From: Parasitella parasitica NRRL 2501
Lineage: Eukaryota > Fungi > Mucoromycota
Direction of reading: 5' to 3'
DNA: 64,000 bases
Assembly (NCBI GenBank): GCA_025201805.1
Contig: MU619331.1
Span: 6,458-70,457, forward strand
The position numbers and the translations under genes were made by a program. Below are positions 1,484-60,639 of the stretch, one piece after another. A model generated the notes under the pieces. The model was not told where the DNA came from. It saw only the letters and a list, made by a program, of their open reading frames with translations, and did no database searches. Position 1 is the first letter of the stretch. Each line of letters opens with the position of its first letter.

Positions 1484-2749
1484 TCATTACATTTGCATCA
1501 ACTATACGATTTACGCAATCACCTAATAAAACTTCATGTCATGTATTACAGTTATGCGTTCCATACAGGGCATTGTGACAGATGATACATACCATAAAAA
1601 CTGCCAATGGCCCAAACGTGCGTTATGAATGCTCTCTATAGAACAAGTTATAGTCGTATATATTGTTGAATTATTCGCTAGCAAACCCAACTCCTAGAGG
1701 ATTTTATATACATACAACATGTTTGATGAGGTTTTTGTCTTGACATTGCTGAAATAAGCACCCAACCTAGTGCTTCGCAAATCAAGCAAATGTTCATAGA
1801 TGTTTAAAAACAAATTTTTTTTTATTGATTGAAGAACAAATAAATGTGCTAGCTTTTTCAGTTCTCAACTTTGCTTTACAGGTTAGTTGATTAACAGGAT
1901 CCACCACGTGAAGGTAAAAGCTCATTACATCCCAAAAAAGTGGGCAAAAGAAAGTCAAACAAAGACAATCTTTACAACTGACAAATCTTAAATAATATTG
2001 CTAAAGAACCTTAAGAGAGGGAGGGTCAATCACGGATTGGCAAGTATTCCAACACGGCGAAAGTCTATGCATCTTACAAGCCAGTAACAACATTACCTCA
2101 GCACAACGACGAGCCTCAAATCAAGGGTCTCCGAAGAGGGAGATTCTATCGGGTTCGGTCAATACCAACACTAGCAATAGGCTATGCATCAGGCCAGCAC
2201 AACGACAAAGAAATTAAAAAAAAATAGTAGGCTAATGTCCACATCTAGAACAGTCTATACATCTGACGCTTCATAGCATTGTATTAAAAGGTCTCTGGAG
2301 AGGGAGTATTTGTCGGGGTCAACAAATATGCTAACGCTAGCAACATGCTATACATCCGGCCAACACAACAATACAAAACATAGAAACAACAGAGAGAGGG
2401 ATCTGGGGGATGTGGCATTCCACTAAGAAAAGAAAAGAAAAGTAAAAAAAAAAATTTTTAAAAGAAAAGATGAGAAAAGATGAAGAAAAAACGCGTTACC
2501 AAGTTTGTTGCAGTTTTTATTTTAGAGGAGAGGTGTGCCCGAAGAGGTACAGGCTCTCGAAGCCACGCTTTATTTTCAGTAATATACAGTACTATATACA
2601 GTAAGTTATGACTCAATCGAACAGCATCAGTTGGAATGGCAAAAAGGTACTTTATGACAATGAATAGTAAATAGTAGTGTTAGAGAACAAAAAAATACCT
2701 TATGAAGGGTAATTTTTATTGAATAGAAATATAGAAACGACAAAAGGCT

Positions 2750-2838
2750 AACTTCCGTGCGCTACCATTAAGTAGAATATCACGTTCGAAGGGTATAATC
2801 TCAGCAAGGATATTCAAAGGACCCAAGCACCCCTAGTT
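2750..2838 (-). ncRNA. TPP riboswitch aptamer in the THI4 3' UTR
   Basis: Minus strand reads AACUAGGGGUGCUUG..GCUGAGAUUAUACCCUUCGAACGUGAUAUUCUACUUAAUGGUAGCGCACGGAAGUU. P1 AACU/AGUU, P2 GGGUG/UACCC, J3/2 CUGAGA, P4 CGUG/CACG, P5 CUACU/GGUAG with UAAU loop and GCG. It lies about 105 nt after the stop of a thiamine biosynthesis gene. Confidence 0.93.
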
Positions 2839-2943
2839 TTTCGCCGATCATTATGAATCAGAAAAGAAGGATTAAATAACAACCAACATCAAACCTATAA
2901 AAAATTAATAACCCATGGAAATTGCCTTATCTGCTTGTCAGAT

Positions 2944-4031
<1,088 letters not shown>

Positions 4032-4670: not shown

Positions 4671-7121
4671 ATGTCTCAGCAAGCACGTATTGACGTTATA
4701 AGCGGTGTCTTTGGTAGACCTCCTCGTGATATTCAATTCCCCAGGAACAGCGCTGGCAAACAGATGGTTGTCTCGGAAATCTTTGGCACCAATGTCTTTG
4801 GCATCAAAGAAATGGGCGACAGACTTCCCAAGCCTGTATTCAAGACCTTCTGCAATCAGCTCAAAGGCGGCCAAACTCTAGACAAAGTCACTGCCGATGC
4901 TATTGCGCACGCTGCCAAAGTTTGGGCTCTTGATCACAATGCTACGCATTTTACTCATTGGTTCCAGCCTCTGAATGATACCACAGCCGAAAAGCATGAT
5001 TCATTCTTGTCATTAAAGACTTCTTCTGTTGGTGGCCTTCGCGAGGTTGATGCAATTGAAACATTCTCTGGATCAGAGTTGTTGCAATCCGAGCCTGACG
5101 CTTCGTCTTTCCCGTCTGGCGGAATGCGTACTACCTTTGAGGCCCGCGGTTACACTGTTTGGGATACCAAGAGGTAAGTTTAGAAAATCATGCAAAATAT
5201 GGATGTCGAGGTATTTATTGTGATACACACAAAGTCCTATGTTCCTTCAAGAAGGCCCTCATGGCACGATGATTCTGTACATCCCATCCGTCTTCATCTC
5301 TTATAACGGCGAAGCTCTCGATGAAAAGTCTGTTCTTTTGAGATCTTCTTCTGTCATCTCCAAGGCCGCATTGGATATCCTTCATCTGATCGAGCCTGCT
5401 GATGGAAGTAAGTTGTTTTGATTCGCCAACTAATCGCGTTGTATAGCTGAAAAGCATATTGCGAGATTATTCTGGGTTTAGTGCAAAGAGCCATGGGTTG
5501 ACCTTTATGTTTGTCTAATTTAGATTCCCCTCGCACAAAAGAGATCTTTACTACACTTGGAACCGAACAAGAGTACTTTTTGATCGACAGAGGTTTATAT
5601 GCCCTTCGCCCTGATCTCAAGACTTGTGGCCGTACTCTTATTGGCGGTCTCCCTGCTCGCCATCAACAACTTGAAGACCATTACTTTGGCAAAATTCCTA
5701 CCCGTGTTTTGGCTGCCATGAGTGAGGTTGAACTGGAATTAGCTAAACTAGGTGTCCCCATCAAGACTCGCCATAACGAAGTTGCACCGTGCCAATTTGA
5801 AGCCGCTCCCATCTTTGAGGAGGCTATGCTTGCTGTTGACCACAATTTGTTAACAATGGATATCATGCATCGTGTTGCACACAAGTACAAGCTCAAATGT
5901 CTGTTTCATGAAAAGCCATTCAAAGGAGTAAATGGATCCGGCAAGCATTGTAATTGGAGTATCTCTACTGATCGTGGTGACAATCTCTTGAGTCCTAGTA
6001 CTTCCCCAGAAACAAATTACCGTTTCTTGATCTTTTTGACCGCTGTTCTTAAGGGTGTCCTTGATCATGGCGATCTTTTGCGCGCTGGCGTTGCATCTGC
6101 TTCCAATGATCACCGTCTTGGCGCTCAAGAGGCTCCTCCTGGTATTATCTCTGTCTTTTTGGGCTCTGAACTCAATGAAGTATTGAATGCTATTGAAGAA
6201 GGTCGCCCTGTCAACAAGACGCTAGCTGGTACCGAAACTACTCACATGCACATTGAGGGTACTACTCTTGACCTTAAGGTTGCTACGTTGCCCAAATTAA
6301 ATCGTGATATGACTGACCGTAATCGTACCTCACCCTTTGCTTTCACTGGCAACAAGTTTGAATTCCGTGCTGTTGGGTCAAAGCAATCTCCCTCGTTCCC
6401 TGTCACTATCCTCAACTCTGCTGTCGCCTCAGCCCTTTTGGAAATCAAGAATGACCTCCACAAGCAAATGGGCTGTAAGGCTGTTGCATCTGAGGAAGAT
6501 ATGTTGGTTGTCATTCGCAAATATATTTCCTTAACAAAGAAAATTCGTTTTGAAGGTGATAATTACTCGGAAGAGTGGGTCCAAGAAGCTGCTCAGCGTG
6601 GTCTTCCTAATATTGTCAAAAGCCCGGAAGCTTTCAAGCGTATCTTGAGCCCCCATAACACTGAAATGCTTACTCGTCTTGGTGTTTTTACTGCGGCTGA
6701 ATTGGAATCTCGTTATCATATTCTTGCTGAAAAGTACACCAAGGAAATTATTATTGAAGCACAAACTCTGTGGGGTCTCTTGATCCAACATGTCCTTCCT
6801 GCTGCCTTTAGTTATCGCCGCGAACTCTCAGAATCTGCTACCTACTTGATGCAGCTTGGTTCGGATGCTGCTCCTGAATTAAAATGGCTGGGAGAATTAG
6901 CTCCCATTGCTACTGCTCTTCAAGAATCTGCTGAGAAACTGGATGCTTTATTGGCCGAACAGCAGCCCATTCAAGAATCTGAGCATGCTGCTGAGCATGC
7001 TTGCACCAAAATTGCACCTGCTATTGAAGAAATTCGCAATTTTACCGATCAGTTGGAAAGACTTGTTGCCGACAAGCATTGGCCACTACCCAAGTATCAT
7101 GAAATGTTTTCCACTCTTTAA
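4671..7121 (+). CDS. Glutamine synthetase type III; exons 4671-5173, 5235-5407, 5524-7121
   Basis: GSIII motifs [91 protein letters not shown] and WPLPKY. Confidence 0.95.
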
Positions 7122-60566: not shown

Positions 60567-60639
60567 TGAGGCTACCAGGGGTCGAACCTGGAATCTCCTG
60601 ATTCGTAGTCAGACGCCTTATCCATTGGGCCATAGCCCC
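60567..60639 (-). tRNA. tRNA-Arg (anticodon ACG)
   Basis: GGGGCTATGGCCCAATGGATAAGGCGTCTGACT-ACG-AATCAGGAGATTCCAGGTTCGACCCCTGGTAGCCTCA, a 73-nt cloverleaf followed by a T-run terminator. Confidence 0.97.

Follow-up and report, generated by a model that had tools for sequence, protein, structure and literature searches.

The mRNA of the thiamine synthesis gene THI4 of Parasitella parasitica carries a TPP aptamer downstream of its stop codon. The aptamer is part of the 3' UTR of the processed mRNA. Judged from sequence and covariation, it is a genuine TPP aptamer, predicted to bind TPP and kept by natural selection in the THI4 3' UTR of P. parasitica and at eight other Mucorales loci. The explanation that we rate best as a whole, and to which we give an even chance, is that of a selected TPP aptamer in the processed THI4 3' UTR of Mucorales, with the cleavage and polyadenylation region as the riboswitch platform. 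Coordinates refer to the window, i.e. the whole stretch of 64,000 nucleotides that was analysed.

The aptamer occupies 2737-2844 of the minus strand. An earlier note, made from the letters of the window, had described a complete TPP aptamer on the THI4 sense strand. In accordance, a local cmscan aligns RF00059 to this strand over its full length (model positions 1-105 of 105; 50.8 bits; E 3.2e-9 in the window). The RF00059 search that the note proposed also gives a significant match when extended to the whole 32.8 Mb genome (E = 6.2e-8), though under the gathering score. Rfam sets that score at 54.3 bits for this family, 3.5 bits above the window aptamer, so a default scan omits the aptamer; the gathering score is an operational cut-off, not a structural feature. 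At this cut-off the only match in an Rfam scan of the whole window is a tRNA gene (60567-60639, minus strand, 59.7 bits). The low score of the aptamer is due to a deleted P3a arm, a P3 loop longer by 10 nt and a P4-P5 junction longer by 3 nt. The generic TPP model is reported to perform poorly on fungal sequences (da Costa et al. 2024, PMC11683625).

The aptamer is composed of P1, a P2-P3 arm and a P4-P5 arm joined at a junction, and the cmscan alignment spans all of these helices. The inner P1 is a short helix, in which AACU (2838-2835) is paired with AGUU (2753-2750). Its two ends coincide exactly with the limits proposed earlier for the aptamer, 2750-2838, which therefore define the core from P1 to P1. 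P2, P3, P4 and P5 are recovered by RNAalifold on nine orthologues. The CUGAGA core of J3-2, the ACCCUU-GAAC core and the GCG...GGAAG core of the P4-P5 arm are intact in the window and match the Rfam consensus, and the columns that contact the ligand are invariant in Mucorales orthologue alignments of seven and of nine sequences. Two peculiarities noticed beforehand, a P4 stem of CGUG/CACG and three extra nucleotides before P5, are both present in the RF00059 alignment.

THI4 lies on the minus strand and is composed of three exons. Exon 1 (3191-3989; ATG at 3989-3987) is defined by its open reading frame and by an RNA-contig joint, 3129>3191, and is 100% identical to a P. parasitica Thi4-family protein carrying Pfam PF01946. 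Intron 1 (3130-3190; 61 nt; GTAAGC...TAG) is skipped in an RNA contig. Exon 2 (3091-3129; 39 nt) is bounded by two RNA joints. Intron 2, the last one (3039-3090; 52 nt; GTATAA...TAG), is removed at the joint 3038>3091 and is also seen retained, in a contig that covers 3011-3120 without a gap; intron 1 is listed as spliced only. The coding part of exon 3 extends over 2944-3038 and ends with a TAA stop at 2946-2944. The three exons total 933 nt and encode 310 amino acids, the same length as the 310-aa Mucor proteins. The C-terminal tail aligns with the THI4 tails of Mucor, Rhizopus and other Mucorales, indicating that the protein does end at the 2944-2946 stop. The aptamer thus begins about 105 nt after the stop, as the earlier note had placed it.

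The public P. parasitica THI4 protein model (P0001) has 280 residues and several Mucor and Rhizopus models have 273-288, compared with the 310 encoded by the RNA-defined exons. It seems that the short models run on into an intron; the Backusella circina gene model does so by retaining the last one. The donor of intron 2, GTATAA, is weak, and retention of this intron would introduce a TAA two codons in and remove the conserved GPTFGAM C-terminus.

The 3' UTR, as defined by RNA, extends over 2681-2943 of the minus strand, is unspliced and contains both the aptamer and a poly(A) signal. The evidence is an RNA contig of 365 nt that spans 2681-3040 without gap or difference, apart from five unmatched letters at the 2681 end. 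It passes through the last coding exon, the stop, the entire aptamer and an AATAAA on the minus strand (2720-2715), and ends about 35 nt past this signal. The signal is where it had been predicted, about 30 nt past the aptamer. The aptamer is therefore in the 3' UTR of the processed mRNA, within the transcript of a thiamine synthesis gene. That transcripts might never extend to the aptamer, which would have spoken against a riboswitch, is contradicted by this contig, in which spliced THI4 RNA continues through the aptamer to just past the AATAAA. The run is identified as RNA by its contigs, which have both THI4 introns precisely removed; the evidence consists of assembled contigs from one public run with growth conditions unrecorded, and the exact 3' end, the strand and isoform ratios lie beyond its reach. 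Logan contigs L014-L017 were considered as cDNA evidence and rejected, as they are genomic and retain the introns. In the RNA run no read-through contig extends beyond about 2681, and only the proximal end is seen, so that TPP-driven read-through is unsupported. The segment 2471-2680, within which another AATAAA follows near 2570, has no contig coverage in this run.

Further downstream, 1982-2431 corresponds to an RNA contig with good coverage. This segment is unique in the genome and has no ORF of at least 45 aa. Within it are two units of about 165 nt with 74-76% similarity and a third, partial one; a T-rich tract precedes it. An Rfam scan of the transcript region 1900-2700 gave no match. 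The segment could be an unannotated cluster of non-coding RNAs; less likely, it is a distal 3' exon of THI4, entered through an acceptor-like site, tttcttag, at 2423-2430. THI4 is flanked on the plus strand by two tandem ORFs resembling GNAT-type acetyltransferases (80-574 and 809-1483) and by a type III glutamine synthetase gene (5511-7121). The order of neighbours is the same in Mucor lusitanicus and in the second Parasitella assembly, and Circinella umbellata keeps the glutamine synthetase neighbour.

To place the aptamer among relatives, THI4 loci of nine relatives and two further Logan contigs were compared. Eight of these 11 loci have an RF00059 match on the sense strand, 80-200 nt past the true THI4 stop. 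The scores are 53.1 bits in M. lusitanicus (L005), 52.5 in the second Parasitella assembly (CBS), 51.2 in Rhizopus microsporus, 43.2 in Absidia repens, and 52.3 and 48.0 in two other Mucorales; the aptamers of B. circina (56.4 bits) and C. umbellata (65.9 bits) exceed the Rfam cut-off. In Rhizomucor, Linnemannia (Mortierellomycota) and Calcarisporiella no aptamer is found within 3 kb of THI4 at E <= 1. Among the nine aptamers, seven of the 20 predicted pairs keep pairing despite changes on both sides. P5 occurs as CUAC/GUAG, CUGC/GCAG, CUGU/ACAG and CUGG/CCAG, and P4 exchanges G:C for U:A. Conservation downstream of THI4 across Mucorales, which had been proposed as a check, is thus borne out at eight other loci from several families, with compensatory changes as expected of a TPP aptamer.

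The aptamer is closely followed by a poly(A) signal in most of these loci. AATAAA begins 5-30 nt past the end of the RF00059 match in eight of the nine and 77 nt past it in Circinella. The background rate of AATAAA in these loci is 0.0013 per position, corresponding to a probability of about 0.037 of finding one within 30 nt. The probability that at least four of five independent lineages have AATAAA within 30 nt is about 1e-5; the background used is less A/T-rich than the UTRs, so the true figure is less extreme, and the coupling is still well beyond chance.

Two further RF00059 matches in the same genome allow a comparison. L002 (G000:C48:57606-57729, minus strand, 48.8 bits) and L003 (G000:C161:54304-54403, plus strand, 36.7 bits) are each on the strand of an MFS sugar-porter gene, 216-259 nt past its last long ORF. 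Neither has a nearby AATAAA downstream, indicating that the poly(A) coupling is particular to THI4. Each sugar-porter ORF end is followed by a branch-site-like UACUAAC motif, and the L003 aptamer is followed by CAG|GTAACG, so that L002 and L003 may lie in a terminal intron, not in a plain 3' UTR. This class of aptamer was called 5' UTR by da Costa et al. 2024 (PMC11683625). A fourth match in the genome, L004 (21.7 bits), was not confirmed on re-scanning.

Upstream 3'-end elements of fungi normally occupy the site where the THI4 aptamer sits. We infer that the riboswitch would use the region of cleavage and polyadenylation as its expression platform. By folding in a TPP-dependent manner, the aptamer and an extension of P1 would change the efficiency of the neighbouring poly(A) signal. 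Removal of the last intron, about 195 nt upstream of the aptamer, could be affected as well, and with it how much productive THI4 mRNA is made. Judging from all known thiamine riboswitches, the output of THI4 would be expected to fall with TPP. A plant-type splice that removes the poly(A) signal would be unnecessary in such a model. The occurrence of intron 2 both spliced and retained in RNA contigs fits this idea about the poly(A) signal and the terminal exon, without proving it. We regard it as possible, at somewhat less than even chance, that ligand-dependent folding tunes the use of the adjacent poly(A) signal and, through that, the maturation of the terminal exon. The more specific claim, that a riboswitch in the processed 3' UTR directly gates cleavage and polyadenylation, with a knock-on effect on last-intron removal and no alternative splice site, is more doubtful.

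Candidate platforms around the aptamer were compared with controls. The 3' flank, GCC followed by UUUUGUCG (2738-2748, minus strand), can pair with 2839-2849 to extend P1 (-8.7 kcal/mol). In eight of the nine species differing sequences allow such an extension, of roughly 6-12 bp; in the CBS Parasitella assembly it is weak. Compared with shuffled flanks, the extended P1 is favoured in Rhizopus, Backusella, Absidia and Circinella (p = 0.004-0.03) and is not significant in this window (p = 0.108). The flanks of a species are not preferred over those of others, which pair about equally well. Upstream of the aptamer a hairpin is predicted at 2835-2895 (minus strand; z = -1.9), whose 3' strand (2842-2854) overlaps the outer 5' strand of P1. 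It is a weak candidate for an anti-P1 element, which would compete with the P1 extension for the segment RAUCGGC. Such a hairpin is predicted in six species with modest z-scores, and alignment by MAFFT and RNAalifold yields no consensus for it. Masking of the 5' splice site of the last intron by the aptamer (10-12 bp in Parasitella and in L014) was also considered and is unsupported, as the control with other windows failed and the register is not conserved.

Two alternatives would have the aptamer act on splicing. In one, as in Arabidopsis THIC, TPP would free a 5' splice site in the 3' UTR, and the resulting splice would remove the poly(A) signal and give long unstable transcripts. The location in the 3' UTR, shared with plant THIC and THI1, is consistent with this mechanism, as are an AG|GUUYGA upstream of the aptamer in Mucor and Parasitella, which is predicted to pair with the 5' strand of P1, and good donors between the stop and the aptamer in Absidia (GTATGG) and Circinella (GTACGT). 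However, a consensus donor between the stop and the aptamer is lacking in seven of the nine species, and GUUUGA is a poor one. Moreover, the poly(A) signal is 3' of the aptamer, and the RNA contig retains the full aptamer with no joint in 2681-3040; no contig with a spliced 3' UTR occurs in the run. We therefore consider this mechanism improbable. In the other, the aptamer would control the last coding intron (3039-3090), by long-range pairing with its 5' splice site or through terminal-exon definition, and retention would truncate THI4. The contigs of intron 2 in spliced and retained form, next to an intron 1 listed as spliced only, would agree with this. So would the complementarity of GGUAUAAUUU at the splice site to AGAUUAUACC of the aptamer over 10 bp in Parasitella, and the pairing of GGUAUGA with UCAUACC in Rhizopus, which carries an apparently compensatory change from A:U to G:C. 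Nevertheless, the window at the splice site does not stand out from other 16-nt windows of the gene in its pairing with the aptamer (a fraction of 0.40 of them pair at least as well here, and 0.04-0.87 across the nine species), the register of pairing varies between species and is absent in Backusella, and any GGUAU will trivially match AUACC, which is universally conserved. In addition, masking a needed splice site at low TPP has the wrong regulatory sign. This control of the last intron has about the same small probability as, or a slightly smaller one than, a plant-type splice.

The remaining alternatives concern whether the aptamer acts on RNA processing at all and to which transcript it belongs. 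It may bind TPP and affect mRNA stability, translation or localisation, or be conserved with no measurable response. No expression platform passed its statistical control in this window, and a conserved 3' aptamer need not regulate: diatom 3'-UTR TPP aptamers are reported to be unresponsive to thiamine, and marine algae (Micromonas, Aureococcus) carry 3'-UTR TPP aptamers, some on genes without splicing, whose mode of action is left unexplained (PMC4260697). Against this, distant Mucorales families have kept both sequence and structure, with covariation, and the close, non-random association with the poly(A) signal speaks for a role linked to processing. A role apart from RNA processing is thus unlikely, though less so than either splicing mechanism. 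Alternatively, the aptamer could belong to another transcript, as a 5' leader or intron element of a downstream gene. The labels of da Costa et al. 2024, which place orthologues in a 5' UTR, in an intron or upstream of an 'ATP binding protein', would suggest this, as would a same-strand gene model that begins 150 nt past the aptamer in R. microsporus and the unexplained transcript at 1982-2431. In Parasitella and Mucor, however, the next annotated gene is convergent to THI4, and the aptamer therefore cannot be a 5' leader there. The RNA contig joins the aptamer to the last exon of THI4 and stops about 35 nt past AATAAA, and 2471-2680 has no RNA contig. Assignment to another transcript is very improbable.

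The THI4 aptamer of Mucorales resembles known systems in part. The fungal TPP riboswitches that have been studied are located in introns, either of the 5' UTR or of the coding region, and work by selecting one 5' splice site over another (Mukherjee et al. 2018, Types I-III). Those of Neurospora NMT1, THI4 and NCU01977 and of Aspergillus thiA share with it the aptamer class, the missing P3a arm and an association with thiamine synthesis genes. Unlike Types I-III, the Parasitella aptamer comes after the stop codon, and none of the introns seen in RNA contains it. In plants, TPP aptamers are found in the 3' UTR of THIC in all land plants and of THI1, the THI4 orthologue, in non-seed plants (PMC11521341); in response to TPP, THIC undergoes a splice in the 3' UTR by which the processing region is lost (PMC12371167). 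Plant THIC and THI1 share the aptamer class, the 3'-UTR location and a link to 3'-end processing with the Mucorales gene (PMC12371167), and THI1 belongs to the same gene family (PMC11521341). The contrast drawn by the earlier note between fungal 5' introns and plant 3' UTRs agrees with this literature. THIC differs in that Mucorales have no conserved donor, the poly(A) signal is 20-50 nt past the aptamer, and the Parasitella contig keeps the aptamer unspliced. Algae and diatoms share the 3'-UTR position in other genes and lineages, and the algal report, in the part covered here, describes no coupling to a poly(A) signal for their aptamers (PMC4260697).

The same RNA is present in earlier surveys. 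Schwartze et al. 2014 reported a TPP riboswitch in all basal fungi and nothing more for Mucoromycota, and Mukherjee et al. 2018 described a single case in Mucor, NMT1, and placed aptamers in the 3' UTR only for Postia eIF5B genes. In da Costa et al. 2024 (PMC11683625), Mucoromycota 'TPPsw-THI4' entries are labelled 5' UTR Type I, intron Type III or next to 'ATP binding protein'. The M. lusitanicus entry reads 'ATP binding protein, 5' UTR', and the location labels are mutually inconsistent. The sequence of this entry matches L005, and the Mucor circinelloides and Rhizopus entries are near-identical orthologues, whereas in the annotated loci examined the aptamer follows the THI4 stop codon. The suggestion that surveys may already list Mucoromycota 3' aptamers thus holds for the RNA, since the 2024 survey lists orthologues, but not for the location, since no row of its table reads 3' UTR. 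The RNA is therefore already catalogued, while, in the literature covered, which does not extend to Moldovan et al. 2018 or Wachter et al. 2007, neither its 3'-UTR position nor its link to the poly(A) signal seems to have been reported.

A second thiamine gene was sought in the same genome. Pfam NMT1 (PF09084) gave no match in a six-frame search of genome G000, a result that does not imply absence, as the search was made exon by exon on an assembly of 450 contigs. Mucor and Rhizopus have been reported with riboswitch-linked NMT1 genes. If the absence is real, the mycoparasite Parasitella may lack the pyrimidine branch of thiamine synthesis.

Our results correct the published placement of the THI4 aptamers of Mucorales, which the survey proposes as antifungal targets in the agents of mucormycosis. 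The Mucorales THI4 aptamer and the 3'-UTR aptamer of plant THI1 may share ancestry. The results also raise the question of whether the 3'-UTR arrangement in THI4 and THI1, common to Mucorales and non-seed plants, is ancestral. To our knowledge, all eukaryotic riboswitches with a worked-out mechanism act via alternative splicing. Direct gating of the poly(A) signal, if true, would add an expression platform that has so far been described in no eukaryotic riboswitch. M. lusitanicus is transformable, and a conserved aptamer that is kept in the processed mRNA beside the poly(A) signal offers a tractable system for the question of whether a metabolite-binding RNA directly controls 3'-end formation.
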